Part shown: positions 36,940 through 58,852 of the stretch, piece by piece
How the letters are laid out: the number at the start of each line of letters is the position of its first letter
How positions within the stretch are numbered: position 1 is the stretch's first letter
Origin: Macrostomum lignano
Taxonomy: Eukaryota
Direction of reading: 5' to 3'
DNA: 64,000 nt
Assembly (NCBI GenBank): GCA_002269645.1
Contig: NIVC01000803.1
Coordinates: 1 to 64,000, forward strand
The notes under the pieces: model-generated
Database searches by the model: none
The model's input: only the letters and a program-made list of their open reading frames with translations
What the model was told of the DNA's origin: nothing
Position numbers and translations under genes: made by a program

Positions 36940-38188
36940 CTATTGAAGCTTGGTATGAAAACACGATCTGTAACACTTTAGGATCAGTTGTTTTGTGTAG
37001 AACTCTCGCTGGTTGAGTGCAAAAATAATGCATATACAAAGCCTCTGATGACTCGGACATCCTGCTCCAGCGTACCAACCAAGCGCGATCATGTTTGCAG
37101 CCGTGAGCAGGATGTAGCTGATGAAGCAGATTGCATTCTTGTGACTCGCTATAAACCTTCCAAGTCTTCTGATCGTTGAGGGCGCATCCGAGGGCGCAGA
37201 TGAGGGAAGCGCTTTCAGAGCGGAAATGAAGGTGAACGCGATGAGGATGAGCATTTGTATCATGAGGAACAGACCGACTAGCGGGATCGTGTTCATGGAC
37301 TTCGGAGCCGACTGGGACGCGATCAGCACGTATAGAAGAATTATTAGTCATGGACATGATGATGGCAATGGACAGGTTCACCGGGTCGCTCTTGTCACCA
37401 GCCAGGAACATGATGCTTGCGAGCAGCGACAGCAGCTCGAACGGGACAATCACCAGCACAGCGTAGTACATCCACCTGCGCTTCAGGTGGAATTGTAAAT
37501 CCACCATATAAAAGTTGAAGTCAAGTGACTTTTCTTTGGACTGTTCACCAGTCACTTTCTCCAGATCCCACTCGCCGACCCGGGAAAGTTCCAGCCCATC
37601 GTACGTGGAGCTGTTGTAGTAAACAGACACCGATAGGTTAAAATGCGTGACGTCGGACGTTCCTGTGCTGACTTGAATGGCGCACAGCTGACTGTCGAAG
37701 GGGAAGTATCTCCCATCGATGGCGCATGCGAACTGCACCACTGCGAATGTGTAAATGCTAGCTTCTCCGGTTGGAAACAATAGAGCATCGGCGAACATTT
37801 CGCCCTTGGAGTTGAGGAACTCGACGTCCGGTAGCCAGAGGCTGTTTCTGTGGAGACGCAGCTGGTGCGGGCTGCCCGGCGATGACGAGTTCCAGGCGAG
37901 TCGAGGGTCAGTCCAGGAAATCCAAATCCAGCCAGAGAACTCCAGCAGCTCCTTTTCGTCCAGGCCGTAGATGGTGTTCAGATAAATCAACACCCTGACG
38001 TCTGTTTGGTAGCCGAAGTAGCTCGGAGACAGCAAGACGTGGCACTGCGGCAGCGCGTGCGGTCTGATGGACTCCGCCAGTGCGCGGCACGCAGGCACGT
38101 CAGCGTTTGTTGCCGGGTCGATGGCGCTTGAGCGCATGATACTGTGAACTAGTAGAAGCAGAGGCAGAATACATTTACAGGTTCGCAT
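36940..38188 (-). pseudogene. Cys-loop ligand-gated ion channel, array copy 1 (frameshifted)
   Basis: Signal peptide, WTDPRLAWN, WLPDV, Cys-loop CAIDGRYFPFDSQLC, M1-M4. A 10-nt insertion AAGAATTATT at 37336-37345 shifts the frame in M2. A 7-aa in-frame deletion follows GEMF. Confidence 0.85.
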
Positions 38189-38479
38189 CTTGCTGGCGCT
38201 CGTCTCGCAGTATGCAATAAAAATTTAGAAATTTGAGGCCTTCAGCCGCCAACAGAGTTCGACTAGCGTTTTTTACACTTACTCAGATTAATAATAATAT
38301 TGCTTGGTACAATTGCAGTTTATTTCATAGTTACTACTCATAGTAAGCCTAAAGACAACATCCATACAACATTAAAATAAATGACACTTTCCTGTCATTA
38401 AGCAATGTAATTGACAGCTTCTTATTATCTGAACACTCGGATAGCAAATGCAGAGTTTTCTGGTCCCGAAAATTGAGGA

Positions 38480-38910
38480 CGTTCTACATCTCTACCGATA
38501 GAAGAGTTCGAACCATGAACTGGGTTGCGACACAATGAGAACTGCGAGACCAAAGATCCCTTAGGAGAACAGCTGACCTGCTCAAAGTGCCATGTGGGGA
38601 GTAGAAAGTGAAGTTCAGTTACTTTTTAAGTGCAGTTGGAACTTTTACTGTATCGTGCTTCTCCGTGATAAACTTGAACAGGAAATCCCAGATAAAGTTC
38701 CGAATTAAAAAAACCTTACTGCAGAAGATTAAATATTTTACCTAATGACTCAAGAAGACATGATGGAAATGCTACCTAGAAAACTGCATCAAAGACATGA
38801 CACAAGCTAGAAAGCAACTTCATGAGGCTTCAGATTGTTACAGAAGAAAACAAGCATGAATAACACGAGATTTCACTCCCGTTAGGTCGAAAAGTATTTT
38901 TATTCACTAG
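38480..38910 (+). mobile_element. Decayed 3' fragment of an L2/CR1-like LINE
   Basis: Paralogous to 50440-50870 (GCGAGACCAAAGATCCCTTA...CAAAGTGCCAT...GTGAAGTTCA; terminal TTCACTCCC.GTTA.GTC). Confidence 0.65.
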
Positions 38911-39013
38911 CTTTTTGAATTTTTGCCTCGAGTAATATCATTAAATACCAGTACCCTCAGCGTGTTTTCAATAATAATCGTAGAAATAGTAATAATATTA
39001 GTATATTTAGATT

Positions 39014-39078
39014 TTGACTTAGCTGCAGGGCTGTCCCGGAGGGGACACAGCGGGAAGGCGCGGGCGCCCATTCCGCTA
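39014..39078 (-). mobile_element. 65-bp 3'-terminal LINE fragment with a 14-bp TSD
   Basis: Flanked by AGTATATTTAGATT at 39000-39013 and 39079-39092. The sequence matches the 3' end of the LINE at 9535-9605. Confidence 0.8.
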
Positions 39079-39349
39079 AGTATATTTAGATTAATAATAA
39101 GAATGTTAATGATGATGCTATTGTTACGTAAACTGCGCCCAACCTAGGATGGTGCATGCTTAAATACAAATTACCTCAAAAACTAGAGGTTCTAGTTGAT
39201 GGAATTTTCCAGAACGGCATCTGTGACACCCAGTTAAGCAAAAAACGATGAGGCTGCGAATGAAGGGCAATTTCTAGCTATGGTTAGCCTTAAATAGGCA
39301 GTTTGCTCTCCTGGCTACTATTTCTGTGTTTTTTGAAGGCTATTAGGCA

Positions 39350-39770
39350 CGGGTCTATGAGAGTTTCCTGCAGGAAGTTTTTCCGCGGAGGTTTTCCCGC
39401 AGGGTTTTTCCAATTGGATTTGAAATCTAGTCTTAGGCTAGTTCTAATCTAGTCCAGCATTGTCTATAGACTGGATTTGACTTGAGATTCCGACAGGAAA
39501 AACCCTGCGGGGAAATCTCGGCGGGGAAACCTCCAGCGGGGAAACCTCCAGCGGGGAAACCTCCAGCGGGGAAACCTCCAGCGGGGAAACCTCCAGCGGG
39601 AAACCTCCAGCGCGGACACCTCCAGCGGGGAAACCTCCAGCGGGAAACCTCCAGCGCGGAAACCTCCAGCGGGGAAACCTCCAGCGGGGAAACCTCCAGC
39701 GGGGAAATATCGGCGGGCAAGCCTCGGCGGGAAAACTTCCTGCGGGAAATTCTCGTGTTCCCTTAGGCAC
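39350..39770. mobile_element. Foldback/MITE-like element with a 15-bp repeat (GGGGAAACCTCCAGC) expanded in one arm
   Basis: GAGAGTTTCCTGCAGGAAGTTTTTCCGC is inverted against GCGGGAAAACTTCCTGCGGGAAATTCTC, and CCCGCAGGGTTTTTCC against GGAAAAACCCTGCGGG. Confidence 0.55.
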
Positions 39771-40154
39771 ATCTTTTAGACCCAGGGTCAGTTGACTTAT
39801 CTTCTCAACATACGCATTAGCGATAATAGCTGCTTTAATGAGGCTGCATTATTGCCTTGAAGCACAATCGTAGTAATGTGGAATCTCTACATAAATGTAC
39901 ACATGATGAATCTTTATGAAAATAAAAAAAATTAATTATATCACGTTCTACGAAATAAATGAGGAAGCATTGAGGAAAATAGCGTTGTGAGAAGAACCAT
40001 GGCATAGTAATCCAGCGCATAGTGAATCTTGGCTGAGGGATGAGATGTTTTTCTCTTAATTTCAAAGTCAAGAGATGTTGCAGCGTCTGATTCACAGCCA
40101 AACCATAGAACAATAAAACCAGTTGGTTCTTGCGCGCAAAGAAATGAATTGAAG

Positions 40155-41309
40155 TCAGATGTATACAAACACAATAATATTAATGATAGTAAGGCTGATG
40201 TAGCTTATAAAGCAGACAACATTTTTGTGCTTTGACAGAAACAAAATCAGTTTCTTCAGTTTAGATGGCGCCTCCGAGGTCGCAGACGAATAAGTGACTT
40301 TTAGAGCAGCGATGAAGGTGAACGCGATGAGAATGAGCATCTGAGCCATGAGGAACAGACCGACTAGCGGGATCGTGTTCATGGACTTCGGAGCCGACTG
40401 GGACGCGATCAGCACGTACAGAGTCATGGACATGATGATGGCGATGGACAGGTTCACCGGGTCGCTCTTGTCACCAGCCAGGAACATGATGCTTGCGAGC
40501 AGCGACAGCAGCTCGAACGGGACAATCACCAGCACAGCGTAGTACATCCACTTGCGCTTCAGGTGGAACTTGATGTTGGCGACATAAAGGCTGTCACCAG
40601 CGGCCACATATCGGGAAAGCGCATGAGTAACGCTTATCAGCTCCCACTCGCCGACCTGGTACAAATCCAGGCCCAGGTTCTCTGATTTGTTGTAGCTGAT
40701 AGACACCGACAATTTGAACCCGGAAGTGTCTGACGATACGGTGCCGAGTTGAGTGGCGCACAGCTGAGTGTCGAACGGGAAGTATCTCACATCGATGGCG
40801 CAGGCAAACTGAACAACTGCGAATGTGTAAATGCCGACTTCCCCAGTAGGAAAAATTACTGCGTCAGTGAACTTGGTGTTTCGGAGGTCAAACATCTCGC
40901 CCTTCGAATTAAGGAAGCCAACGTCTGGTAGCCACACGCTGCCCCGGTCGACTCGCAAGTACTGCGGGCTGCCTGGTGCTGAAGAATTCCAGGCCAGCCG
41001 AGGGTCAGTCCATGAAATCTGGAACCAAGCGGAGAACTCCAGCAGCTCCTTCTCGTCCAGGCCGTAGATAGTTTTCAGCAAGATGTGCACGCTGACGTTC
41101 GTTTGGTAGCCGAACTGGCTGGGGTACATCAACGTGTGGCACTGCGCCAGCGACTGCGGACCGATGGACTCCGACAGCGCTTGACACGCAGCAGTGGCCG
41201 CATCAGTGCTGGCTGCTGAGTTTGACTCTGAAACAGTCGCAAGCAAGAGCAGCACAGGCAGCAGTAATGTTGCTGTTGAAGACATTTTGTTGCCACCGGG
41301 ATGGTTCAT
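40155..41309 (-). CDS. Cys-loop ligand-gated ion channel subunit, array copy 2 (intact, intronless)
   Basis: 384-aa ORF: signal peptide, WTDPRLAWN, WLPDVGFLN, CAIDVRYFPFDTQLC, M1 YYAVLVIVPFELL, M2, M3, short loop, M4. Confidence 0.92.
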   Translation of the reverse strand: MNHPGGNKMSSTATLLLPVLLLLATVSESNSAASTDAATAACQALSESIGPQSLAQCHTLMYPSQFGYQTNVSVHILLKTIYGLDEKELLEFSAWFQISWTDPRLAWNSSAPGSPQYLRVDRGSVWLPDVGFLNSKGEMFDLRNTKFTDAVIFPTGEVGIYTFAVVQFACAIDVRYFPFDTQLCATQLGTVSSDTSGFKLSVSISYNKSENLGLDLYQVGEWELISVTHALSRYVAAGDSLYVANIKFHLKRKWMYYAVLVIVPFELLSLLASIMFLAGDKSDPVNLSIAIIMSMTLYVLIASQSAPKSMNTIPLVGLFLMAQMLILIAFTFIAALKVTYSSATSEAPSKLKKLILFLSKHKNVVCFISYISLTIINIIVFVYI

Positions 41310-41871
41310 ATGCTTATTAACGGTAGATAAGTATTGAACTCAAATATTTGCGTTTGTCGAGCTTTTATCTTGCGTCTTGTGAGAGTTTTTTGCTTTCCCG
41401 AGTTAATTCATGCTAAACTGCTCTGCTCTCAGTGCTATATATGGATAGAGATGAGGGATTAACGCGTTGGTTCTAAACTTTTATTTGCTGCATTTTCATC
41501 TCCACAAGCTTCCTCGAGAGGTTTGGCTTGGTAAAACATTTCCGCATTTCCATTTCAGAGCTGCAGATCTCGCTCTCGTTGTCAAGGTAAATAATTATCT
41601 GCATGCTGGTTGTTCTAGACTAGGGGGGGGGGCACTCAGCTCGTCACGGCTTGTTTCACCATCAATTAATGACATTTCTATTGGCAAATAATGAGTCCTT
41701 AGTTTTCGCAGTATTTTTTAGTCTGCTGAGTACATCTATCTCCATGAACATTAAAGGACGATTCTCTATGGAATAGCCTTTTTTTCGCAGTTGCAAACCA
41801 GTTTTGCCCAATTGTCCAAATATATGGAGAATATGATTACATTGGATCAAATTCTGTTAATTCCCGATAGT

Positions 41872-42202
41872 CAGTGGGCCGTAGCCTGGCCGTGTCAGCG
41901 GTCCAGGTTCGATTCCAAGTGCAGTCACATTAATTTGGGCTAAATTGAATCGCGGCTTGGCTTGCTCGTGCAATTAACGGCCTTGAGGGCCGACCCCAAG
42001 GCACAGTGAAGTGTACATGCCTAACGATAAATAAAGTTAGGGCCGCTGTACACTCCTGTGTGAGTGTGTGCCTGTGCGTATGACTGTGTACGTATCCGCG
42101 CTTGTGTGCCTGCTCAGGGGAGTCGGCGGAATGGGCAGCAATGCCTCTCGCCGGTTGTGTGACAATGTCACTTAGGTGCACACAGCGCCTGCCTCTAATA
42201 AA
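41872..42202 (+). mobile_element. tRNA-derived SINE family A, near full length
   Basis: B box GGTTCGATTCC; shared body; 3' hairpins and CCTGCCTCTAATAAAA; imperfect ~13-bp TSD (AATTCCCGATAGT / ATTTCCCAATAGT). Confidence 0.78.
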
Positions 42203-42299
42203 AATTTCCCAATAGTGGATAGTGGATTGAACTGAGTCTTCCCTATGGGGACAGGCGGGGCTGGTGTATGTTCATGTTATGTTAGTATAAATGACACGA

Positions 42300-43700
42300 G
42301 ATGATGAATTATGAACGGCGACAGAAAAGAGTTCGGCTTAACGATGAAGATCTGCTCAGGATGGCGCAGAGCTCATTCTCTCGTCATATATGATCCAGTG
42401 TCTTAGCAATATTTGCACTGGCATCGGGTTCTGCTCTCAAGACACTAAATGCATGACAGTGTCACAAGAATCCTGCTCAGATAAACGGTTCAAACCAATA
42501 CAGGTTTATTGTCGACACAACGCCGTCGGTAGGCTAGTTTTCTTTACGAGGCAAACTTACCTCTACAGAACAGTCCAGACCAATTTCAAGAAGTTCTTTT
42601 ATGATAACTGTTGATATTTCTTAATGAACAACTTTCCTCATGAAAAGACAAGTGAGTGACTTGAGTTACGTATGAATAGAAGATGCGTTAAAGGTGATCG
42701 AAAAAAGCCCTAGTGGACGTAATGTTGAGTAGTAGATGAAAGGATGAAAACAGCTATATTACTTAAAAGTATCTACTGAAAAGACGTGTTCCCAAGCCAA
42801 AACATGTACACTCAAAGTGGCCTATTTTTTAAAGCTTCCTACTCATTTGGTGAGTAGTATGGATTTAAAATTCAGAGCAAGTGCCGCTCATATGAACCCA
42901 GTCATCATGCAGTGCGTCTTCGCTTTTCTATAGCTTTTTTCAAATCTGATTAATTATTTTCTTGCAATCGCCACGTCGGCCGAATAGGTAAAAATATAAA
43001 GATAGCTATACACTGTAATTGATCGTACTACTGTGCTTTCATTTTATAAATAATCTAAAAGGTATTGCTCTATTGCCCACAGTGCCACCTGTTGAAGGTA
43101 CCGACGGCGTCGGGGTGATGACGGAATTCTGGAGAGACTAGCTGAGGATGTCCAGCAGTTGAGGCTTGCCTACTGCCGAGGCTTGATCAGCGAACTCAGA
43201 GAAATTTGCACAGGGTGTCCATAGTCACCGGGTGCCACCCTGGAAGGAAGGAACTTCTGGAAGGTCCAGAAGTTCCGCCTGAGTAAAGACCAGTGACCAA
43301 AGAAGTCAGAGCTGATGCAGAGACGTGCTGATGAAATTTTTGGAGGCTTGGCAAGGCTGTGCTGAGGCGCAGTGCTGGTTGGCGCACAGGGCTGTATTGA
43401 ATACACTGGCGCTTACGGGAAAAATCCGACGCTCTGGCAGAATTGTTGAATATCTCGATGGTCCGGAGGGTTGGTGACTTGATTATCGTTTGCGAAGGTG
43501 CGCAAGAAAAAGTTAGCCGATGGTCTTGACTTTTGACGCAGCAAAAACTCTTACGGCTCTTACGGCTTGTACATCTATTTCCACTGGATTCTGTTGCTAA
43601 GGTCCAAGCATAACGCTCGTATTTTTTAATCCATTTAGCTCGTACCATATGCCAATTATTCAATGTGCTGGTCAACAGTCAGCCTCATCCATAGCAGACT
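42300..43700. mobile_element. Possible decayed PIF/Harbinger-type transposon remnants
   Basis: Plus-strand YRTVQTNFKKFFYDNC resembles DDE_Tnp_4 transposases. Minus-strand WHMVRAKWIKKYERY...SG resembles a MADF/Myb-like partner ORF. Both are heavily degraded. Confidence 0.28.
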
Positions 43701-43922
43701 GCGCCAAAGCAAACCTACTGGTCAAACATGCAGCAGTTTTCAAACACACGCCCACAGACTACAGGGCCAGATCACATGTTACAAACATCAGAGCCACCAA
43801 GCTGAACAAGTGGGCAGAAGCTGAACTACTGTTGGATGATTTTCTACGGCAAACTTAATGAATAATGTGACAAATAGGAAATTTAAATATTTGACCAGCG
43901 AGCACTGTGAATATAATTATAG

Positions 43923-44753
43923 CAGGGGTTGGCAAACCTTTTAACCTCAAGGGCCAGATAGAGAACCTAGAGACTGACTGTGGGCCCGGAGGAGGGGAGA
44001 GAGGAAGAGAGAAGGGAGGTAAGAGAAAGGAGAGGTGAGATAATAAAGGAGAAGAGAGGAGTGGAGAAGGAGGAGAGAGAAAAGAGAGGAGAGGAGGAGA
44101 GAAAATGAGTGAAAAGAGAGGAGAGAGAGGAGAGAGAAGAGAGGAGAGAGAAGAGGAGGAGAGAGAAGAGGAGAGGAGGAGAGGAGATGAGGAAGGGAGG
44201 AGAGGAGATGAGGAGAGGAGGAGAGGAGATGAGAAGAGAGGAGAGGAGAGAAGATGAGAGGAGAGAGGAGAGGGAAGACGAGACGAGAGGAGAGGAGAGA
44301 GGAGAGAAGATATGATAGAGAAGAGAAGAGAGGTGGGGAGAGATGAGAGGAGAGAGAAGAGAACATAGGAGAGAGGAAGAGAGTAGAGAGGAGATTAGAG
44401 AGAAGAGTGCTGAGAAGCGATATAAACATTGGGTGGGCCGGATTGCTTGTGGGCCGGATTGCTTGTGGGCCGGATTGCTTGTGGGCCGGATTGCTTGTGA
44501 CGGATTTCTTGATTGCTTGTGAGCCGGATTGCTTGTGACGGATTGCTTGATTGCTTGTGGGCCGGATTGCTTGTGGGCCGGATTGCTTGTGACGGATTTC
44601 TTGATTGCTTGTGAGCCGGATTGCTTGTGACGGATTGCTTGATTGCTTGTGGGCCGGATGCAGCACATTGTGAAGTTTCAAAAGACCCCGAGGGTCGGAT
44701 AGAGATGCTCTGCGGGCCGCATGTTGCCCGCGGGCTAGAGTTTGCCGACCCTG
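43923..44753. mobile_element. hAT (Charlie-like) non-autonomous element filled with GA-rich and 16-bp repeats
   Basis: TIRs CAGGGGTTGGCAAAC and GTTTGCCGACCCTG, with subterminal GCGGGCCGCATGTTGCCCGCGGGC. No matching 8-bp TSD was found. Confidence 0.62.
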
Positions 44754-44836
44754 CATGAATTAGAGACTGGGAGAGTAATGGCTGGCGTACGTGTCATCTA
44801 TAAGCAGAACACCAGAATGAAAGTCTTTAACTTACC

Positions 44837-45930
44837 ATGTCTTCACTGGCGGAACTCCGGATTCTTCTGAGCCACACAGTCTTGCTGGTATCAGCCAGCA
44901 CTGAATGGGCTGCCGACGCTGAAGTGGCCGCCTGTCGCGCTCTGTCGGAGTCCATCGGTGCGCAGTCGCGTCAAGCTGTCACCGAAGCACTGTGGCTACG
45001 ATACAAATATTGAATTGTTGTCTTGATGCTCCATGTGAAGACTATATATATGTACGGCCAGGACGAGAAGGAGCTGGAGGAGTTCACTGGCTGGATTCAG
45101 ATGACCTGGACTGACCCCCCGGCTAGCCTGGAGCTCAACGGAAAGTCCACTGAAGCAGCTACGGGTGGAGAGGAACAGCTTGTGGTTGCCGGATGTTGGA
45201 TTCTGGAATACGCGGGAAAGCTGAGAGCTTTATGACGCACGAAATGCAAAGTTGTAGGACGCCACAATGTTCCCCACTGGTAAGGTTAAGATCTATATCT
45301 TCTTTGTAGTCCGATTTGCCTGCATCATACAAGTCGCCAAGTTTCCATTCGACGCGCAAGTCTGCTCAAGTTTCCAAGTCTGCTCCATTCAAATCGGCAC
45401 GATATCTTCGGACTTGACGGTGTTCAATATTACAGTGCAAAATATATTTAAAGAGAATATTGATTCGGTACAGTCTTTGTCAACTATCAGTGAATGGGAC
45501 TTGAAAAATATTTCTCAAACGGACATGATCGACTCTATTGGTGGACAGCAATTCAAAAGTGTGAGGCTTCTCCTTCACCTGGAGCGAAGGTTCATGTATT
45601 ATTGGTGATTGTCTCGTTCCAGCTGCTGTCGCTGCTCGCAAGCATCATGTTCCTGGCTGGTGACAAGAGCGACTCGGTGAACCTGTCCATCGCCATCATC
45701 ATGTCCATGACTCTGTACGTGCTGATCGCGTCCCAGTCGGCTCCGAAGTCCATCCTCATCGCGTTCACCTTCATCGCAGCCGCTCAGAACAAAACAGATA
45801 GATCAGCTGCTCACAAACCGGAGGCTGAGCATAGAAAGCGAGGCTGGAAGACAGTTCTATTGCAACACAGAAACGTGGCTGCTACATTGCAGCAAGTGTC
45901 TGCAATGCATGCGCATTTTTGTTTATATCA
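44837..45930 (+). pseudogene. Cys-loop ligand-gated ion channel, array copy 3 (pseudogene)
   Basis: MSSLAEL...ACRALSESIG start. Multiple frameshifts and stops, an 18-nt duplication in the Cys-loop, a 7-nt deletion in M1 and a 48-nt deletion in the M2-M3 region. Confidence 0.85.
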
Positions 45931-46827
45931 CCAAGTAGCTATTAAGGACAATTTTAACTCCAAAACTTTCTGCAATTAGTGGTGAATGTTTCAATGAGAA
46001 ATCATGGTGACAGAATTTTGCAAAACAAATGCTTCAACTCAGTCAACTCAATCTTTGAAGTTCGGAAATAATTTTTCGAATGCACGACTCCAATGGCTTA
46101 TTTATACTTTAGCTAATATGCTCGTAGTTAGCGCGCATCTCATTTGTACTGTTTCTTAACTTAGTACAAAGTCGAATAAAGCATTAACTAACTAATATTG
46201 CAATAATACACGTTTTAGTGATACGACCCCGATTAGTAAAATAAATCTAAAACTAATTCATGCAAGGACCCGTCAGAACCTGCTGCATGTTTTCTTATGT
46301 AACAGATAAAGTTTCTTTATTTGTTCGCGTAAAATGGTAGAGAGCTGCTTGTTTGAATATTTGCAGCAGTTTTTTAGATCAAAATAGATCAAGATCAAAA
46401 CACTATACTGTAATTGCAAACTTTGATTGGTTGATCGGACAGGTGGGCCATATTGAAACAATTGAAACAATATAACATGCAAAGAACCAGCTATTACAGC
46501 ACAGCAATGACAATCAACGTAGGTAGGATTTAGTGCACGCGGTGCATACTCTCGTAGTGTTGTATTTTTGGGTAAATGAACGAACCGAGAATTCAATTGT
46601 CGGTGCAATCAAGCTTAAAATTGTAGTGGTATAGTAGTACTCGTAGTAGTTGACGGCACAGTAGCAATACTTGCTAAATGGACTACTGTTGCTGAGAGTT
46701 CCTCAATAGTACTATTTCAAGTCAAACAGTTCGTTAAAAAAGTTAATATCGATATCCGATCTCACTTTTGTCAGAAATTGACAAACTTTTTGCTCTATTT
46801 AAGAAAAAATCGTGGCTAAGAGTGCAG

Positions 46828-47995
46828 CTACTTATCGGCGCTCAGGTGGGCGGGCCAGACATAGATGAAAACGAGCGCGTTCACCCCGCTGAGCAGCAGG
46901 TAGGCGCAGCTGCTCACAACAGCCCGGTGCGAAACAAGAAGGTCCAGCAGCTTTTCGTCACCTTTGCACTTTCACGGCTCGCAACCTGCTGTCTGCCAGG
47001 GAAAGCAGCGATGAAGGTGAACGCGATGAGGATGAGCATCTGAGCCATGAGGAACAGACCGACTAGCGGGATCGTGTTCATGGACTTCGGAGCCGACTGG
47101 GACGCGATCAGCACGTACAGAGTCATGGACATGATGATGGCGATGGACAGGTTCACCGGGTCGCTCTTGTCACCAGCCAGGAACATGATGCTTGCGAGCA
47201 GCGACAGCAGCTCGAACGGGACAATCACCAGCACAGCGTAGTACATCCACCTGCGCTTCAGGTGGAACTGGATGTTGACTACCGGGTAGATAGCGCCATT
47301 TGCAGTAAAAAAGTATGAGTTATGATCAACAGACTGCAGGATCCATTCGCCAACTTGGTACAGCTCGAGTCCACTGTCTTCCGAGTAGTTGTAGCTCACC
47401 CTTGCCGAAAAGTTGAGTGCAGCTACGTCAGATGTAACTGTGGCCAGTTGGGTTGCGCAAACCTGGCTGTCAAACGGGAAGGATCTCACATCAAGGGCGC
47501 ATGCGAATTGGACACGCAAAATGCGTAAATAAACGCTTCTCCTGATGCACTAAGAACTACGTCAGAGAATTTCGCGTTTCTAATGTCGAACATCTCGCCC
47601 TTGGAATTCAGAAAGCCGATGTCAGGAAGCCACAGACTGTTCCTGTCGATGCGCATGTACCGTGGACTGCCTCTAGCTGATGAGTTCCAGGCCAGCCGAG
47701 GGTCGGTCCATGTCAGCTCAATCCAGGCAGAGAACTCCAGCAGCTCCTTGTCGTCCAGACCGTAGATGGTCTTCAGTAGTATTTTAACAGCGACGCTGTT
47801 TTCGTGGCCGAAATGGCTCGGCGACAGCATGACGTGGCACTGCGGCAGCGACTGCGGTCCGATGGACTCGGCCAGTGAGCGGCACGCGGCTACGTTGACG
47901 TTCGAGGCCGGATCGATGGTGGCCGACGGCGGGGGGACGACAATCAGAAAACAGTGCAACAGAATGAATCTGGCTGGCTGAATCAGGTGCTGCAT
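46828..47995 (-). CDS. Cys-loop ligand-gated ion channel subunit, array copy 4 (two 1-nt frameshifts: assembly errors or young pseudogene)
   Basis: ORF halves 47995-47520 and 47519-46914 join if one G is restored (AFCVVQFAC). Restoring one A in ACGAAAAGCTG recovers M4 KLLDLLVSHRAVVSSCAYLLLSGVNALVFIYVW...*. Confidence 0.8.
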
Positions 47996-48571
47996 TCTAC
48001 AGTAAGTATCTTCAGAACGTCTGACAATTGGATTTCTCTAAATGGATCGAATGCAAAGCTGCTGGGAAGTGGGAAGCTTCGGTAGCTTTAAACGGTGACA
48101 AATATAGTTAAGAGTTTGCCGCCCAGCAGATTCGCACCAATCAGGAAACTTTGCCCTCCTCATCTTCTATTCAGTGCTTCGCTTTTATCAAGCGTTCTTA
48201 ATATGCTACTTAACTTAAACCATAAAAGTAGCTTCATCACTCTTCACCACTTGCATTGCTACTAATAGTAGTAGGAACTATTGTTTCAAAACTGTTCAAC
48301 AGCGTATTGTACAAAAAAATTAAAGCCTTCCATATTGCGAAAATCCCATATAAAGTGAGTTATAAGCTATACAACTGGAAGATTTGAGATTGGCTCTAAC
48401 CTCCTTTGCTAGATAGAAAGAAAAAGGATGCTGGATAGTTTTGCGTCAACTGGCTTCGCAGCGAATCAGAGCTAACGAATTTATACGAATAAAAATCAGG
48501 TCTCAAGGCAAGGAAACTCCAAGGTTATAAATTTTTTTAAAGTCGTGGATATTCAGTAACAAATCGTAGCC

Positions 48572-49732
48572 ATGCTCACCTGTCTTAGGTCTGTAATCTT
48601 TCGACTGTTGCTGGTAATGGGGAGCAGCGCTTTTTTACGCTTGATCGCCATCAGTCCAGCCTCCAACGCAGACAAGGCAGCATGCCGGGCTCTGGCGGAG
48701 TCCATCGGGCCGCAGTCGCTGCCGCAGTGCCACGTCATACTGTCTCCCAAAAACTTTGGCTACAATACGAACGTCGAGATAGTCATATCGATCAAGACCA
48801 TTTACGGACTGGGAGAGAACGAGCTGCTGGAGTGGTCCGGTTGGACCTTCATCAGCTGGACTGACCCAAGACTGGCTTGGAACGCATCCGAAAGCCAATT
48901 GGATCAACTGCGAGTGGAGCGGAACAGCCTGTGGCTGCCAGACATTGGCTTCTGGAACAGCAAGGAGGAGAGCTTGTACGACATTCGAAATTCTGGCCTC
49001 TTGGAAGTGACGGTGTTTCCCTCCGGCCTCGTGTACGCCTACGTGTACCTGGTGATTCGGTCTGCATGCGCAGTTGACATCAGACTATTTCCATTTGATC
49101 AGCAGCTTTGCACTATAGAGTTGGGAACCATCACTTCTGACTCGAGTGTCTTCAATTACACACTCTTAAGCACCTTATCGATCAACAAGATAGACGGAGT
49201 GTCCTACCAAGTTGGGGAGTGGAATTTGAACGAGCTATCGCAGCACAATCGCACTAATGTTATCAATGGTCAATCGTTTCCTTGCACCGAGATCAAGTTC
49301 CACCTGAAGCGCAGGTGGATGTACTACGCTGTGCTGGTGATTGTCCCGTTCGAGCTGCTGTCGCTGCTCGCAAGCATCATGTTCCTGGCTGGTGACAAGA
49401 GCGACCCGGTGAACCTGTCCATCGCCATCATCATGTCCATGACTCTGTACGTGCTGATCGCGTCCCAGTCGGCTCCGAAGTCCATGAACACGATCCCGCT
49501 AGTCGGTCTGTTCCTCATGGCTCAGATGCTCATCCTCATCGCGTTCACCTTCCTGACCGTTGTTTCTCCAAGGCAATCAAGGCGAAGTGAACGAAGCGCT
49601 AAGATCTTTTTCGACTGCGTTGAGTTCTGTATTAAACATAAAGATATTATTTGTTTTATCAGCTACCTTGTTGTCAGTGGACTTAACGCAGCAGTGTTTC
49701 TGTTTCTTCTACCATATCAAGACAGAAAATAA
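48572..49732 (+). CDS. Cys-loop ligand-gated ion channel subunit, array copy 5 (intact, intronless)
   Basis: 386-aa ORF with signal peptide, WLPDIGFWN, CAVDIRLFPFDQQLC and four TM segments. Confidence 0.92.
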   Translation: MLTCLRSVIFRLLLVMGSSAFLRLIAISPASNADKAACRALAESIGPQSLPQCHVILSPKNFGYNTNVEIVISIKTIYGLGENELLEWSGWTFISWTDPRLAWNASESQLDQLRVERNSLWLPDIGFWNSKEESLYDIRNSGLLEVTVFPSGLVYAYVYLVIRSACAVDIRLFPFDQQLCTIELGTITSDSSVFNYTLLSTLSINKIDGVSYQVGEWNLNELSQHNRTNVINGQSFPCTEIKFHLKRRWMYYAVLVIVPFELLSLLASIMFLAGDKSDPVNLSIAIIMSMTLYVLIASQSAPKSMNTIPLVGLFLMAQMLILIAFTFLTVVSPRQSRRSERSAKIFFDCVEFCIKHKDIICFISYLVVSGLNAAVFLFLLPYQDRK

Positions 49733-49999
49733 GATAACGAGAATGATTAATATCAACAGTAGCGCAACCAGAAATTTTTCAAATTCTGAGGGTAAAGTGG
49801 CGGCGGAGGGGTGGCTCTGTTTTTGGCGAAAATTCGCTTGGTCCCCCTTTGGTTTAAAGGGGGGGGCGACGCCACTGAATATCAAAGATTTGGTTTGGCA
49901 ACAAAATAAATTTGACCATCTCTAAATTTAAACGATAGATCTTGTGCACCTGTTAATCTAAACACGAAGAGGCCCATAGATGCCCACGTAGTTTCATAA

Positions 50000-50870
50000 T
50001 GCTTTTAGAAGAATTAGTTGGCCTTGGAATACAATAACTCACTCTTTAGTACAGTCGAAGTTGAAAGCATGTTCTTGACGCCTCTGAGGCCTGGGGGCTG
50101 TTGTTTCCTAGAACCTGGGCTCGAAGTCTAATCGAGAGGATCAATTTCAGATCTTGCAAATCATTCTCCAAGGCTGACTGCAATACCCAAAATTGAATTA
50201 TTCAGTACCGGGCCTCACTAGCAAATCACTCAGACTCCATCATCTCGAGACAGTGAGGTTGGCATTACAGCTAAAATGAATACTGAAATAATGCGAAATT
50301 TTCAAAATGGACGAGTAACGAAATCAATCAGAACACACAAAGCTACTCGAAGTAGTTTTGAACTAGAATTTACGAGGCACTGAAAGCAAAGAGTAGAGAA
50401 CTCTGAAAATTTAACTCACTACTCAGCCGAAAAGCGTCCTAGAAATTTGCAATCCAGAATTGAAGCGCACCCTGTCACAGTTAGATTAGCAAACCATAAA
50501 CTGGCCTGCGAAACAATGAGGATTGCGAGACCAAAGATCCCTTACGAGAACAGGACCTGCCCAAAGTGCCATATGGGGGTAGAATGTGAAGTTCACTTCC
50601 TGTTTAAGTGCTGTTGGAACTTTTTAGTGGCTCCCCGTGATAAACTTGAACAGTTGAAAGTCTCGGATAAAGTTTCGGATTTTAGAAACCATACGGCAGA
50701 AGAAAAAGTATTTTACCGAATGACTCAAGTAGATAGAGGCATAATGGAAATTTTTGCAAGATTATCAAAGACAAGCTAGAATGCAACTGCCCTGAGGCTT
50801 CAGATTGCCTTGATAAGAGTACTTTGTGCACTAGACTTCACTCCCCCGTTACGTCCAGAAAAATTATTGA
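50000..50870 (+). mobile_element. 3' fragment of an L2/CR1-like LINE
   Basis: RLANHKLACETMR...PYENRTCPKCHMGVECEVHFLFKC is typical of the C-terminal zinc-binding region after RT. A second copy lies at 38.5 kb. Confidence 0.7.
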
Positions 50871-51658
50871 CTGCTTTTTGCATTCATTATTTCGTTGTAT
50901 TTTGCAACTCAACGGTTTCACTACAAGTTGGACACACAAAGCAGCTCAATATTTGCCAATTGCATCCATGGATTTCTGAGAATGTTTGCTGCAGACAACG
51001 CTAGGCTAATGTTTAACAATCCACTTTCAGAATTAATCAATAAATGTATTTGTCGCTATACAGTCCAATTTATATTGTTGGCGAAGACCCCAGCTGTTCA
51101 GTGGTGAAATTCATAAAGAATTGCATCTCAAGATATTTACACTTGCACTAATCATTTGCTAGCTAAGCCGCCTTTAATGTGTTGATTAAATTGAATTGAA
51201 CTGTGTTGTCTGGCACTCTAGCAGCTTCATCAGTGAGTGCAGTTTCTATGGCGGCTGCTTAAATATTTAGTCACGCAGTTGCTAAGCCATTATTTGCTCG
51301 AGAAGCAACAAGTGTACTTCTGTTATTTGCTTTTTGTCAAGCGTTCGGTTATTACTGATAATCAAATTTAACACGAATGCAAAATAGCTATCAGCAAGTC
51401 AAAACCCGTTGCAATAAAGAATAATTTTATTTGAGAAACTACGAAAACATGATAACTTTTCAGAGTCGCTTTACTTTGAAGGAGGGTTACCATATTGAAT
51501 TCAATGTTTGTAGAACGTCAATTATATATACTCTATTCTATGCGAATAATCCCAGCACTATCAATGTGCCATCTTTCCCAAACATAAAGCCGTAAAATTA
51601 TTTGTGCATCTGCTCAAGCTGAAAGGCCAAATAATTAAAAGTTAGGGGGTTACGTATC

Positions 51659-51863
51659 AGATTAAACATGCCTTTTGAGGGAGTTATTTGTATAAATCAC
51701 GAGGGCCTGAGGCCCGAGGGATTTATGAAAATAACTCCCGAAAAAGGCATGTGTAATCTCGTATAAACCATAGACATAAAGACTTGACGGGATATTATTG
51801 AATATTACCAAATAAAATCCCGGGGAACGCAAATATTGTCACGGAAAGTCTTTATTTCTATGG
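51659..51863. repeat. Double-palindrome element (40-bp and 17-bp inverted arms)
   Basis: Arms 51659-51698 and 51720-51759 (5 mismatches) surround GGGCCTGAGGCCC. Arms 51768-51784 and 51847-51863 (1 mismatch) follow. Confidence 0.75.
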
Positions 51864-52003
51864 ATTATGAAAAATTTTTGTGTCGTGATGTCTGTGTTAT
51901 ACATCTTAAGAATCCGTCTTGCAGTGATTAAACGACTCAATGAAACTTTCTGAGATGCCAAGGCTCATGGCTACTCATGCGAAAGTAAATAACAGCAACG
52001 CTC

Positions 52004-53191
52004 TTAAGAGTCCAAATGAGGCCATAAAACCAAAAACGCGACAGAGTTTAGTCCGCTAGTCGACAGGTACAGAAATAAGAGGACTAGGTTCCTTTTTCCG
52101 TCAAGACCCTGCCAGTATTGGCTCAAAGTTGAGCTCGGCCTCGTCCCCTCATTGAAATTTATCAAACGCTTTTGATCGACGGCCGCGATGAAAGTGAAAA
52201 CGATGAGGATGAGCATTTGTATCATGAGGAACAGACCGACTAGCGGGATCGTATTCATGGACTTCGGAGCCGACTGGGACGCGATCAGCACGTACAGAGT
52301 CATGGACATGATGATGGCGATGGACAGGTTCACCGGGTCGCTCTTGTCACCAGCCAGGAACATGATGCTTGCGAGCAGCGACAGCAGCTCGAACGGGACA
52401 ATCACCAGCACAGCGTAGTACATCCACTTGCGCTTCAGGTGAATGTTTATTTTGTGAAAGGGAAAGCTCTCTTCAATACTGTGCAATACAGCCTGTTCTT
52501 GCTTAACTCCCTCCAGCTCCCATTCACCGACACCGAACAGTCCGATGTCATTGCTCATGAGACGGGCAGACAGCGATATGTTTAACTCGTCCGAATATGA
52601 CACAACCGTGCCGACTCCAACTGAACAGACCTGCCGGTCGAAAGGAAACTTTCGCACATTCAGGACGCATCCAAACTTTATCACCAGGTAAATCGGTAGA
52701 ACCACCGTTCCCGTGCTGTACACTGAAACCGAAATAAATTTCGAATTACGGAGATCAAACATATCGTTGTCCTTTCCATTCCAGAAACCAATGTCCGGCA
52801 GCCAGAGACTGTCTCTGTCGATAACTAGATGGTCTACGGCCTTGTCGGACGAGTTCCAGGCCAGCCGAGGGTCGGTCCACGTCAGATCAATCCATGCGGA
52901 CCACTCCAACAGCTCCTTCTCGTCCAAGCCGTACACAGCCATCAATTCGATTGTAACCGAGACGCTGGTGTCGTAGCCGAAACTCTTTGGCGATAGTATC
53001 GCGTGACACTGCGGCAGCGACTGCGGCCCGATGGACTCCGCCAGTGCGCGGCACGCGGCCACGTCAGCATTGGCTGCCGAGTCGATGGCGGCCGAGTGGG
53101 TAGCTGCGCTGGCTACCAGAAGCAGCACAGCTGACAGTGGCAACTGTCCAATGCAGCTCTGCCATGCTGCTGGAAGGGAAATTAGTAACAA
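52004..53191 (-). CDS. Cys-loop ligand-gated ion channel subunit, array copy 6 (start codon unresolved)
   Basis: 395-codon open frame with WLPDIGFWN, CVLNVRKFPFDRQVC and M1-M4. It begins at TTG with an in-frame TAG just upstream; the nearest ATG (53165) is out of frame. Confidence 0.85.
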   Translation of the reverse strand: MLLISLPAAWQSCIGQLPLSAVLLLVASAATHSAAIDSAANADVAACRALAESIGPQSLPQCHAILSPKSFGYDTSVSVTIELMAVYGLDEKELLEWSAWIDLTWTDPRLAWNSSDKAVDHLVIDRDSLWLPDIGFWNGKDNDMFDLRNSKFISVSVYSTGTVVLPIYLVIKFGCVLNVRKFPFDRQVCSVGVGTVVSYSDELNISLSARLMSNDIGLFGVGEWELEGVKQEQAVLHSIEESFPFHKINIHLKRKWMYYAVLVIVPFELLSLLASIMFLAGDKSDPVNLSIAIIMSMTLYVLIASQSAPKSMNTIPLVGLFLMIQMLILIVFTFIAAVDQKRLINFNEGTRPSSTLSQYWQGLDGKRNLVLLFLYLSTSGLNSVAFLVLWPHLDS

Positions 53192-54560
53192 GCACAGATA
53201 GTACAGCGGCTACAACTTTGCGATATTCCAGCAACTGAAAATCTCATTATTGTAGAGCTTACCGTAAATTTTGCTTCTCATAATTTCAAAAAACTTTTAA
53301 TGAATCAGATTCTCTTTCGGTTTTGGGTGCTTTTCATTTTATCGGCTCTTTGGTTTCCCTTTTATAATTTCCCAGATTTACATCCAATCGAAGATTGCAA
53401 TTTATTTTAAAAGTCCTACTTTTATAACTACTGAGAGTAGCTATGCATGTTTATATTAATCTGCATTGAATAGGACAAAACTCTCCTACAGTCTGCTTTT
53501 ACTGTGATCTCCTTGTCGTGCTGTAAGTCTCATGATTGAGGCAAGGAAATTAAGAACGGAAAATATCTGACGCGTTAAAGGCTAGCTCACACCGCGCCGT
53601 CATTGAACTACCAATGATGTACAGCATTGTATCGCAGTGTATCATTTTGAAGGGGCTTTAGGAGGTATATCAATCAGACCTGATTGTCTCTTGTCACTTA
53701 AACTTTCATCATGAAATTTGAGCTTGGCCCCAGCTGATAAACAGACTAACAAGAATCCCATAGAATAAGTAAAATGACTTAAGCACTGATTAAGTCATTT
53801 TAGGAGCACTAAGACAGACTGTATTGAAACAGCTAGGGGGAGAAAAAATGCTAGATGATTTTTCAATAGTGCACAATGTAGAAGAAAAGCGCTGGCAAGA
53901 GTGAAGGGCGTAGGCAGGGATGGAGAATAGCATACAGGCTCTGCTGAGTACAGTTCATGCAAGAGAAACCCAAAGTGCACAGTGACGACCACCTCAGCCC
54001 AACCACTATTATATAGCTAGTCTCTCTCTTCAAGCGTTGGCATTGAGGTGGCAAGGCGAGAGAGAGAGACAGAGACAGAAAAAGAGAAAGGAAAGTAAGG
54101 AGGTCTCCCCGTAGGCATCTCTCCGCCAGATTGGCAAGCGCGTACACGATCTCATCGTAGCCTGCAGCTCTTTAAAGCTATAGTCTGAGCCGCGCTAAGG
54201 ACCCCTCATCAGCGCTTAGCCCTGGTACACACGCATTGCCCACTATCTAACTGTGCAATTTACCGAGGCCAGTCGCAGACCTAAGTCTCTATCTTAAGCT
54301 ATCTACTTCAGTCTATAGTAAAACCTAACAAGGTAAAAAGGCCTTCAGTTTTCTTGCGCCGTGGTACGCTGTACGCTCGAGCCATAACTCTTAACTCTCT
54401 GCCCCCATTCGCTTTAAACAGCTATTCATAGGCGCAGTTCAGTTGCTAAGTGGCTTTTTCGCACCAATTGGACAGCCGCATATAAACGTGTAGCTCTATC
54501 AAGGCATTTTCAAGTTTAAAGCATATTCCCCAGCGAGGCAACCAGCTGAGCAGGCCGGAC

Positions 54561-57036
54561 ATGAGCAACGTACCTGGCAATGAGGAGTCGGAGGCTGGCT
54601 CCCTGTTGCAGAGTCTCATGCTGGCCATGCGGCAGCAGCAACTCATGGAGCTGCAGGAGGCACTAGCTGAGTCGCATCGAGACCAGCAGCCTGCACAACC
54701 GCAGCCGCAGCAGCAGCAACAGCGCGCGGCTGCTGCTGACTCGGCGTCGGAAGCTGGTGACGAAGTTTACGCAACAAAGCCGAACTGCAAGCCTGGCGGA
54801 TACGCCGAAGAAAGCTTTATTCACCTGTCCGAGGCGGACAAAGAAGAGTTCGGCTGCAGAATTTGGTGAGTCAACCATATTTTTGGAGCGAGCCTACCAG
54901 GCTGATACGAATGAATCGTGTGCCTATGAAGCTAAACACAGCCGCCATAAGAGAGCCTTCCGTTCAAAAGTTTTGAGCATTTTCTATTTTGAATCTTTTA
55001 CTCGCGAAGCTGTTGGCGGTGATGTGAACCGGCCTTTAGCTGGTATTGTGAATGATAAAAGTGAAGTTTACACTTTACTGCCGAAATTCCGAATTGTAAA
55101 TAAAGCAAGCATGCCTTTTCTCCGGGATACGAGTAGATGAACAAGTTTCTCAAGAAAGTTTTAAGGGAAGTTCCGGTAATCTCTTTAATGCTTTAATTCT
55201 AAACGGACTTTCTTGGCTGATTGTCTGCTTTAATCCGAAAAGTGAATCACAGCGAAATCCAACTCGTCCAGATAAAACTTGTCAATCAACCTCGGGTCGG
55301 AAGGTCAGACGTTGCAAGTTTTAGTGCTAAACAGTAGAAATACTCCTAAGTCAGTGTCTCAATCAAAACAAATCGACGTGTCAGAAGCTAGTAAACGTGG
55401 AATTTAACAATGGAAAGTCAATAAAACAAACCGGAAAGGAAAGATAATCGTATCGCTAGTCGACGGTGCTCGCAATATTAACACATACACATTGCCAGTG
55501 TCAAAGGGCGGCATGCAATGTGCTAAGCCCTGGACCAGTCTTGCGTAACTGCATGCATTCGGAAGTCATTCAGCGTTTTGGCCTCTGAAAAAAACGATTC
55601 AGACCTGTAACCATAGCAACGTCTCGTGTGCTTGATTTAATGAATGGGCTGCAATCTGTGCAGACTTAAATGCACCCTTGGCGCAAAGTTGGATTTCCAC
55701 ATGCATAGCGGCGACCCCGAAAGTTAGGTCAACCGAAAACTCTCACACTTCCACACCCGGCTTTTTGAGTTGCGTAGAGCAGACCGGTTTAGCAAACTTT
55801 CAACGTCTCTGTTAAGAGCACGCATGAGAGTCGTTCGTTTGGTTTTTCGACATAAATATTATTGCGCAGTTGGTTTCACCAGTGGCCTTTCATTCGCGTA
55901 TCATTTTAAATCGTTCATTATTATTCTGCCTTTGGGGCACGCTTGACGATATTAAACTCGCCTGATTATCCACCTTCGAACGCAGCTTCAACATCATCCG
56001 CGACTGCTACGAGTGCCGAAACGCGCACAGATTCTGCTACGCCTGCATCTATGAGTGGAGCGAGCAGTCGGGCCAGGGCTCGAATCTCTGTCCCGTGTGC
56101 CGCTGTCCGGGCGAGTACGCGCACAACGCATCACTAAACGAACGCCTCGGAAAGCGCCGGGTGCGCTGCACGGAGGCGCCGCCAGGCAAGTGCAATTGGC
56201 GCGGCTGTCTCAGCGACCTAGACGGTCATAAGCACCGGCAGTACGAGTTGCACGAGATCTACACCAGCTCGGAGCTGCCCAGCCTGCGACCCGAGCGCAC
56301 GGGTGAGACGGTAAGTGGCCAGCGACTGACAACCACGGAGCTAGTGAAACAGCACAGCGAGGCTAAAACGGCGGCTGCAGCGGCCACCACTCCGGTGGAA
56401 ACAACAGCAGCCTCGACCACAGCGGCTGGAGCAGACAGCAGCGGTGGGGCTCGTCTGCTGGGCCGAAGGCAGCAAGACTCGGCCAGGCGGCTACCCAGCG
56501 CCCAGCAGCGGCAGCAGCTGCAACAACAGGACTCGCAGCCCCAGCAATCGCAGCCACTGCAATACAAGCGGCTCGTCCGACCCCGACCGCCGCCGCCGAG
56601 TGCGGCTCAGCGGCTGCGCGAAAGTCGCGAGCAGCTGTCACTGCTCATGACGCTGCTCACTATTCAGATGCAGGAACGGCAGCAGGCGATGCAACAGGCC
56701 CAGCTAGAGGCGAGGCGGCGCGAGATCGAGCGACGCAGGCAGCTGGCCGAGATTGACAACCTGAACAGGCGGCTGGCGCAGGTGGCCGCAGACGTTAACC
56801 AACCGACGCCGCAGCAGCAGCAGCAGCAACAACAAAGACAGTTGGGACAGCAGCAGCAGCCGCTGCAACAACCGCAACAGCAAAGACAGTTGGCACAGCA
56901 GCAGCAGCCGCAGCAACAGGCCGCTCCACGGCTACCGGCTATTGGCGCAAGCGTTCGAAGCAACTCCACAACGACTCAGAGAGGTGGTACTAGCAGAACA
57001 GGTGGCGGAGGTGGAGGCAGCAATGGTCACGCCTGA
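54561..57036 (+). CDS. RING-finger (C3HC4) E3 ligase with a TRAF-type zinc-finger segment and Gln-rich coiled-coil tail
   Basis: Exons 54561-54865 and 55986-57036 join as CRICFNIIRDCYECRNAHRFCYACIYEW...CPVC, followed by VRC...CNWRGCLSDLDGH. Confidence 0.82.
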
Positions 57037-58477
57037 GACGCATGGCTGGTGCGAATGGCTAATGCAGCTGTCAGTGACCCAACTCGCACCCGAACTCGAG
57101 GATACGGTGTATTGAAAGACTTCGACTTGAATTTTTATATGCACCAAAAATCAGAATTTGTGCTTTTTTTCTGTGATCCCATGAAAACCGCTTTTGCAGA
57201 CAAATAGGCTGGTTCGACTGTTTTATAGTGCGACTCTCTCTCCACACACACACGTGCATGTATGTACAGCGATGCACTGCTATCTGCAGTGCAACAGTAG
57301 CTTTCCACTGCATAGATGATTAAGTTTGTTACCTTTCCGCATCGCATTGTCTTAATGCTTTCAAATCTGAAACTATTTGCTTGCTTAACCGCTGTCAAAG
57401 TGCTATGTATTTTAGTTTTATAAATTAGCCAGCTCTTTATATTTTCCCTATAATATTATATAGAGTCAAGCTTTCTATAATCGCTATCCAAAAATAGGCT
57501 GTCAATCGTGATTTTATTTCTGTAGAACGATAGATCGCATGTCCTAAATAAATGGACGTTCCGTCCACACAGATGGATAATATACGGTTTAAAAGCTTAA
57601 AAAAGGCAAAGTATGGAAGTCTTAAAAGTAGTCATGTATTTTAACTTCGTTAAAATTGTAACGCAGATAGAGAATTTAATTACACGCAAATATTTACTAC
57701 AAAGCTTTCATAGACAGACGGCTTCATTCTTAGCAGAATTTTTAAACCGTCAATTTTAACAAATGCAAGCGGTATTATACTACTGATTAGAATGAAAGTA
57801 GTATCGCTTTTGAATATTGACAGTCACTCTATTAGTCATTTGAGCTGTGGTGCTTTGGACATAGACTATAAAATAAACAAACAAAATTGGAAAATGACTG
57901 TCGATACGGGACTGGGAGCTAAGTGACATGTTTATCTGACCAGTTTTACTATCCATTTTATATTAGTCTATGGCACAAACGTGTTAGCATAAAATACTGT
58001 GTTTGTTATTGACTATAGTCAAGTTTGCTTGTCTAAAGTCCCGATCATCGTAAAAGCGAGATTTTTGCAGAGCCCATTTGGGCTTACACACATTGAGTTT
58101 AATCCAAGATATGTTTGCCAATTAGTAATGGAGCTTTTGTCTATGGTAGCAAAGGTGTGGTCCAACAATTTGGTCCATACCGGCATAACTGACAGGCAGT
58201 GAGGACGGAAGCACGAGAGCAAGATCAGCCCCAGAATCGTGGATAATACGCCAGACTGTTGAACAAACGCCATTGGCTTTTGATCGAAGCGCATTTTTGA
58301 CCATGCTAAATAAAATGCTCTTTTTGTTTTTGTTATAATTGAGCCAATTGAATTTTTTGACGTCACCCTCTTGGTACAAACTACAACTATAACTCACGAT
58401 TGGGTTTCAAATTGATGCTTATTGGACCAAATTAAACGTAATAGCAATTTTTCTAGCGAGTTCCGAGTTGCAGAGAC

Positions 58478-58852
58478 TCAAGGCGACTGCGGATCGGCCA
58501 CGGTATCCGACTCCTCCGTGACCTCCTCCTCGCTGATGCCCACCTCCTCCTCTTCGTCGTCCATCTCCTCATCTTCCTCCTCCTCTTCCTCGTCTTCTTC
58601 TTCCTCCTCATCTTCGTCGTTACCGCCGCCGTCCTCGGAGGAGGCGAGCGAGGCCGACCGGCTGGCACGGACGGCGGGTGCAGCCGGCCTGCACAGCTGC
58701 TTGGCAGCGGCGGAGAACTTGGCAGCCAGCTGGGCCTCGAGCCGGCTCAGCAGCTCCTCCTCGTTCACTGGCCTGTCCGGGTCAAACCAGCACCGGCTGG
58801 CGAGGGGCGGCAGAGTCTCAGAGAACAGCGTGGCAGTTGGCAAGCCGGCCAT
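58478..58852 (-). CDS. ANAPC15: Anaphase-promoting complex subunit 15 homolog
   Basis: TLFSETLPPLASRCWFDPDRPVNEEELL resembles human APC15 as recalled ([28 protein letters not shown]), followed by an acidic tail. A splice acceptor lies 3 nt before the ATG, with a candidate 5'UTR donor near 59746. Confidence 0.75.
   Translation of the reverse strand: MAGLPTATLFSETLPPLASRCWFDPDRPVNEEELLSRLEAQLAAKFSAAAKQLCRPAAPAVRASRSASLASSEDGGGNDEDEEEEEDEEEEEEDEEMDDEEEEVGISEEEVTEESDTVADPQSP

Follow-up and report, generated by a model that had tools for sequence, protein, structure and literature searches.

Closest among the described systems are the clustered protocadherins of fugu and zebrafish, in which regional gene conversion acts in the variable exons (Yu et al. 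2007, PMC1852091); regional conversion in protocadherin clusters is also attributed to Noonan et al. (2004), as cited in PMC1852091. A second is the set of intronless nicotinic-like receptor genes in lophotrochozoans, whose tandem expansions are proposed to have arisen by retroposition and subsequent tandem duplication (Jiao et al. 2019, PMC6896357); the study nowhere mentions gene conversion (0 occurrences), and flatworms lie outside its sample. Here we describe six intronless copies of a Cys-loop (pentameric ligand-gated ion channel, pLGIC) receptor gene, c1 to c6, arrayed in mixed orientation at 36.9-53.2 kb of a 64,000-nt stretch of Macrostomum lignano DNA (assembly GCA_002269645.1, contig NIVC01000803.1, positions 1 to 64,000 of the forward strand), hereafter the window. 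Each copy carries a block of ~257 nt that encodes the end of strand beta10, the transmembrane helices M1 and M2, the M2-M3 loop, and most of M3, and that is homogenised at silent sites among the copies. The best explanation is probably region-limited interlocus gene conversion between members of the array. The process itself is known; the gene family is new to it, and the example is unusually clean.

The array resembles the teleost protocadherins as a set of tandem neural membrane-receptor paralogues in which one coding part is >99% identical, silent sites included, while the recognition part is diverged. In both systems the homogenised region is excluded from gene trees. The GC content at third codon positions (GC3) is raised in the converted part of the protocadherins; it is also higher in the block than in the ECD of the array, but the excess is modest for a matched amino-acid set. 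In the protocadherins, conversion covers the 3' portion of a large exon (extracellular cadherin domains EC4-6 onward, hundreds of codons) and starts at a point that varies by subcluster, whereas in the array it is confined to a 257-nt island inside the gene, and both sharp edges of this island are common to all copies. Constant exons that are truly shared and attached by splicing exist in the protocadherins but not in the array, and gene family and phylum differ. Like the lophotrochozoan expansions (PMC6896357), the array consists of single-exon Cys-loop genes in tandem with very diverse extracellular domains (ECDs), but the M3-M4 loop of its copies is very short, and they carry an N-terminal C-x14-C motif. 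In the library searched, no relevant paper dealt with gene conversion or concerted evolution of pLGIC/Cys-loop families. The resemblance to constant/variable clusters is an analogy only: the immunoglobulin, T-cell receptor, protocadherin, and UGT1 clusters each have one physically shared constant exon set, joined by splicing or rearrangement, whereas each copy here contains a separate block within a single uninterrupted reading frame.

By sequence and structure model, the copies encode pLGIC (Cys-loop) subunits with the four-helix M1-M4 layout. Pfam PF02931 (Neur_chan_LBD) matched c5, c2, and c6 above its curated cut-off (E=2e-29 to 3.6e-32), and PF02932 scored 21-25 bits, under its 28.1-bit cut-off. 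The Cys-loop was present as two cysteines 13 residues apart enclosing an FPFD motif (C-AVDIRLFPFDQQL-C in c5), and both cysteines and P-F-D were invariant across the alignments. Residues 67-357 of c5 aligned to the human nicotinic acetylcholine receptor (nAChR) beta4 subunit in a phmmer search (E=1.8e-32). The AlphaFold model of c5 had a moderate mean pLDDT (predicted local distance difference test) of 66 and placed helices M1 to M4 at residues 249-273, 279-300, 309-330, and 357-385; with this model as the Foldseek query, the top matches were full-length nAChR chains (E=1e-14). The block occupies residues 243-327 of the modelled protein, from the last residues of beta10 to three residues before the end of M3. 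The channel is probably cation-selective, judging from an Asp that aligns to the -1' Glu of cation-selective nicotinic receptors. The Cys-Cys pair of loop C was not found in the loop C/pre-M1 region of c2, c5, or c6, and we ruled out a nicotinic acetylcholine receptor alpha-type subunit because loop C is without adjacent cysteines.

Close relatives outside the array were few. Exact protein look-ups of c5 and c2 in public collections gave no match, a word-index protein search returned only insect and nematode receptors of ~25% identity, a profile search for relatives added nothing close, and a scan of metagenome contigs with a degenerate 75-nt pattern had no match. The closest outside relatives were three near-identical Macrostomum lignano proteins in UniRef (P0004, P0154, and P0155) with 47% identity. 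All three end at ...LLPFEM, ~20 codons into M1 and within the region homologous to the block; speculatively, the gene or transcript models behind them may have been truncated where a block is repeated.

Pairwise block identity between copies was 92.6-100% in nucleotides and 95-100% in protein. An earlier reading of the window, made without database searches (the sequence-only reading), had reported that the block is identical base for base over 257 nt between c4 and c5, that c2 differs at about two positions, that c1 and c6 switch to a different 3' variant (MIQM versus MAQM) in a mosaic pattern, and that the flanking coding regions are strongly diverged. These descriptions were borne out. The match of c4 47013-47269 (-) to c5 49296-49552 (+) was 257/257 nt, and the perfect match even spans 261 nt (c4 47013-47273, c5 49292-49552). 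There were exactly two differences in c2, an Arg to Lys replacement at the match of c5 49314 and a silent change at the match of c5 49534. The six nucleotides at c5 49520-49525 read GCTCAG (Ala-Gln) in c2, c4, and c5 and ATACAA (Ile-Gln) in c1 and c6. Searched with blastn against the c5 block, c2 was 99.2% identical, c6 96.4% over 252 nt, c1 94% with one indel (97.3% to c5 with the insertion left out), and c3 91% with a deletion; the core of the c3 block (45603-45753) was 98% identical to the other copies. Outside the block, nucleotide identity was 54-72% in the ECD and 34-54% after M3, and the 300 nt upstream and downstream of the copies were effectively unalignable (29-45% identity).

The edges of the block were shared by all copies. 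We used a two-breakpoint maximum chi-square test with permutation, in place of GENECONV/RDP, and defined the block as alignment codon columns 254-338 (85 codons). In all 10 pairs, the test placed the low-divergence segment from codon columns 251-255 to 334-341, and the observed maximum was reached in 0/200 permutations for every pair. Mean pairwise identity in consecutive 30-nt windows rose from 0.45 to 0.93 to 1.00 across the 5' edge and fell from 0.93 to 0.45 across the 3' edge. The most variable part of the ECD was the segment from loop C to pre-M1, with 13-17% amino-acid identity.

Divergence at silent sites was low in the block only. The frameshifts of c1 and c4 were mended solely to align codons. 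The sequence-only reading had named equal synonymous divergence (dS) in block and ECD as one outcome contrary to its proposal; instead, Nei-Gojobori dS was 0-0.12 in the block, against values from 0.73 up to saturation in the ECD and post-M3 regions. Nonsynonymous divergence (dN) was 0-0.026 in the block versus 0.25-0.51 outside it. Where dS was measurable, ECD dN/dS was ~0.2-0.35, which indicates ordinary purifying selection with no demonstrable diversifying or positive selection. The proportion of four-fold degenerate sites that differed was 0-5% in the block and 43-58% in the ECD; for c4 and c5 the counts were 0/45 and 26/47 (Fisher p=2.6e-10). Given the proportion of synonymous differences (pS) in each pair's ECD, the binomial probability of so few silent differences in the block was 1e-11 to 1e-32. 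The array is old, because ECD silent sites are near saturation and the intergenic DNA is unalignable.

Two controls bear on whether a conserved protein could account for this pattern. Within the array, the ECD motif WTDPRLAWN reaches 92% protein identity, but its same-residue codon pairs differ in 49% of cases, compared with 0-8% in the block. Outside it, a locus of the nematode Mesorhabditis spiculigera (L001; CATQJA010002634.1, 400-20700) holds ~ten pLGIC genes in tandem, repeating every ~2.2 kb. It resembles c1-c6 in its tandem layout, diverged ECDs, and almost invariant pore-lining peptide; the M2 peptide of the nine copies compared is 90-100% identical. Unlike in c1-c6, the silent sites of its M2 exon are as diverged as those of the ECD, with differences in 457/913 (50%) of same-residue codon pairs in M2 and 366/652 (56%) in the ECD, a pattern of purifying selection only. 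Protein-level selection therefore cannot explain the block, since the nematode pore peptide is near-invariant yet its silent sites differ. The nematode M1, M2, and M3 are encoded in separate short exons (M2 of 96 nt), so that no long continuous homology is available. This contrast supports, without proving, the view that the lack of introns permits conversion in the Macrostomum lignano array. The annotation of the nematode locus shows two fused gene models, one of 512 aa and the other of 1215 aa.

Some simpler accounts were ruled out on these grounds. Purifying selection alone fails because both the conserved ECD motif and the Mesorhabditis array still differ at silent sites. Codon bias alone is contradicted by the ~50% of same-residue ECD codon pairs that differ and by the M4 tail, which is not GC3-rich. 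Recent duplication with fast ECD divergence does not agree with the differences at 43-58% of ECD four-fold sites or with the unalignable flanks.

Separate trees of the ECD and the block, proposed as a check and built here for the array copies, were in conflict. The ECD and post-M3 trees were concordant and separated (c1,c2,c4) from (c3,c5,c6). The block tree instead joined the identical c4 and c5 with c2, then c1 with c6, then c3, on branches 20-30 times shorter. The block is also internally mosaic. By the four-gamete test, all four allele combinations occur within it: position 49314 groups c2 and c6 against c1, c4, and c5, and positions 49520-25 group c1 and c6 against c2, c4, and c5, which requires recombination or recurrent mutation. 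Differences were concentrated at the block edges, in c3 at the 5' edge (9/47 versus 1/130 in the core, p=2.8e-5) and in c6, which has 10 differences from c5, in the last 54 nt (7/54 versus 3/200 in the rest, p=0.001). This clustering implies that tract end points varied and that the core was refreshed most recently, and the graded block identities of 100, 99, 95-97, and 93% imply several events at different times. GC3 of the block was 0.82-0.88, compared with 0.63-0.70 for the ECD, although the block had the lower GC at codon positions 1-2; the tail with M4 was not GC3-rich. Raised GC3 was a criterion for regional conversion in the fugu protocadherin clusters (PMC1852091).

The broken copies c1, c3, and c4 share the block with the intact ones. 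The clearest case is c4, which has two frameshifts elsewhere and a block identical to that of the intact c5. Homogenisation is therefore independent of selection on the protein of each copy. Taken with the restriction of silent identity to the block, the tree conflict, the internal mosaicism, a GC3 excess that is modest for matched amino acids, and the nematode control, this supports the interlocus conversion that the sequence-only reading had proposed.

We infer that one continuous segment of ~257 nt was copied repeatedly between array members by non-reciprocal homologous recombination (ectopic, or interlocus, conversion), which would have wiped out silent and replacement differences alike. 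No other uninterrupted stretch under strong protein constraint would be as long as M1-M3, and that constraint would have kept M1-M3 similar enough to start homologous recombination. On either side lie what appear to be the most variable, indel-rich parts of the gene, namely loop C to pre-M1/beta10 and the M3-M4 loop. Heteroduplex DNA may have halted at these flanks, which would leave every copy with the same pair of abrupt edges. Once begun, conversion would hold identity high and so sustain itself. The participation of broken copies makes the process look like a mechanical consequence of how the array is laid out rather than a selected device.

Several points weigh against regional conversion as the explanation. 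The evidence comes from six copies in one array, whereas the classic proof of concerted evolution has blocks grouping by species and ECDs by orthology, and the block sequences rest on one assembly. The edges coincide in all copies within 3-10 nt, which is sharper than random conversion tracts alone predict. The GC3 excess is only modest when judged for the matched amino-acid set (p=0.01-0.08).

The sequence-only reading had added a functional interpretation, that a homogenised pore would keep subunits compatible in co-assembly and ion selectivity while the ligand-binding domains diversify. Homogenisation by conversion is well supported; no result obtained here supports the functional part. In its adaptive form, which we regard as unlikely, conversion is real but selection maintains the block and its edges, so that mixed subunits share conductance and selectivity while their ECDs explore ligands. 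The edges do fall at the structural boundary between ECD and transmembrane domain (the end of beta10, and three residues before the end of M3) and are the same in all copies; the near-invariant block protein and the variability of the adjoining loop C to pre-M1 segment, the most variable of the ECD, also fit. However, pseudogenes make up at least three of the six copies and nevertheless share the block, the ECD dN/dS values give no sign of positive selection, no exon is shared, and homology-limited conversion would account for the edges without selection. The nematode array holds its pore peptide constant by purifying selection and without conversion, and conversion is thus not needed for a constant pore. 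The assembly of pLGIC subunits depends largely on ECD interfaces, so it is not obvious how sharing an identical transmembrane block would bring about co-assembly. It is likewise unlikely that the block is a selected, interchangeable pore cassette with edges policed by selection, a germline constant/variable logic for flatworm chemoreception enabled by the lack of introns.

An artefact of assembly or polishing, in which reads cross-mapped within the similar block and consensus polishing over-homogenised the copies, is quite improbable. Perfect identity over 261 nt between copies 2 kb apart is a pattern that polishing can make, the sequence is known from a single assembly, and the 1-nt frameshifts in c1 and c4 could be consensus errors. 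Cross-mapping presupposes high similarity, however, and hence explains only the last few percent. Private variants were also kept within the block (the insertion and two single-nucleotide differences in c1, two single-nucleotide differences in c2, private substitutions in c6, deletions in c3), most read types would span a block of just 257 nt with unique flanks, and the raised GC3 and edge-weighted differences look biological. We give very little weight to constraint at the nucleotide level, by which a second function of the DNA or RNA (an embedded RNA, small-RNA target, regulatory element, or overlapping frame) would freeze silent sites in each copy separately. The unusually sharp edges common to all copies would fit such a function, but the block had no Rfam family match, its folding energy was no better than shuffled (z=-0.23), and no antisense open reading frame (ORF) was shared by the copies. 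Neither the tree conflict, the four-gamete pattern, nor the graded identities (100/99/96/93%) are predicted by it, and dead copies are not expected to retain such a function. Region-limited conversion is the reading we carry forward.

Table 1. Positions in the window of the six pLGIC copies and their blocks
Feature	Coordinates	Strand	Description
c1	36940..38188	-	pLGIC pseudogene as assembled
c1 block	37228..37492	-	ATACAA (Ile-Gln) variant, as in c6
c2	40155..41309	-	intact 384-aa pLGIC subunit gene, without intron
c2 block	40314..40570	-	2 differences from c4/c5
c3	~44840..45980	+	heavily degraded pseudogene; several ECD stops and frameshifts
c3 block	45576..45772	+	carries 7-nt and 44-nt deletions
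c4	~46828..47995	-	pseudogene as assembled
c4 block	47013..47273	-	261/261 nt identical to c5
c5	48572..49732	+	intact 386-aa pLGIC subunit gene
c5 block	49292..49552	+	reference block; least variable core 49353-49498
c6	52004..53191	-	395-codon open frame, status uncertain
c6 block	52190..52441	-	95.3% identical to c5

The six copies counted by the sequence-only reading were all found (Table 1), with the correction that only c2 and c5 are clearly intact as assembled. The frame of c1 is shifted by a 10-nt insertion at ~37337-37346 (gene-strand letters TAATAATTCT) inside the block, in the part that codes for M2, and alignment shows further lesions: M4 has probably lost 1 nt, and the ECD lacks 8 codons without loss of frame. 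The lesions of c4 are two 1-nt frameshifts, one in the ECD and one in the M3-M4 loop, and its block is free of them. Copies c4 and c5 are arranged head to head with their blocks 2 kb apart. In c6 there is no in-frame ATG before the signal peptide, and the ATG nearby at 53165 is out of frame. The 5' end of c6 (53165-53191, -) has a branch-point-like tactaat followed by tttcccttccag, with a pyrimidine tract ending in AG just upstream of the frame; from these motifs it may be a 5' exon/intron, a trans-splice acceptor, or a damaged start.

The 10-nt insertion in c1 is a lesion that conversion could in principle pass to intact copies. At the CYP21A2/CYP21A1P locus, a broken neighbour copy exchanges short tracts with the functional copy. 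Exchange within the array could similarly, in principle, carry the c1 insertion or the c3 deletions into intact genes; unlike at CYP21A2/CYP21A1P, no intact copy in the window was seen to have acquired a lesion.

A second island of silent identity, of 36 nt, lies in the ECD of c5 (48698-48733, +) and encodes the peptide ESIGPQSLPQCH, a motif also present in the other copies and located within the family-specific N-terminal C-x14-C motif. Same-residue codon pairs in this island differ in 9/104 cases, versus ~0.5 elsewhere in the ECD. The island may be a short conversion tract, though it is too short for ordinary conversion. Between the copies, two stretches of 62 nt and 50 nt are repeated with 88-89% identity at 38511-38646 (upstream of c1) and 50492-50624 (between c5 and c6). 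The latter pair lies in an ORF (50447-50779) with no Pfam match, and the repeat may be a dispersed repeat or the remnant of a mobile element. The rest of the window (1-36000 and 54000-64000) is extremely dense in minisatellites, with 50 Tandem Repeats Finder rows and arrays of up to 2.8 kb (24773-27578); such a density would be compatible with a flatworm genome. Other ORFs in the window encode a retroelement RNase H (9642-11057, -), a cytochrome P450 (15535-16563, +), and a C2 domain (27590-28657, -).

The array is an unusually clean case of one reading frame that evolves in two modes, with the sensing domain subject to birth, death, and divergence and the pore module evolving in concert. The boundary between ECD and transmembrane domain is where experimenters build ECD/pore chimeras, and the evolutionary mode switch is located at that same structural boundary. 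If the block were in truth an interchangeable pore cassette, subunits with different ligand-binding domains would mix freely into channels of one fixed conductance. Trees and orthology calls of these receptors must omit the M1-M3 block, and at this block short-read and transcript assemblies of such families will probably be interrupted or turn chimeric. If the contrast with the nematode array holds widely, the presence or absence of introns would decide whether paralogues can homogenise.

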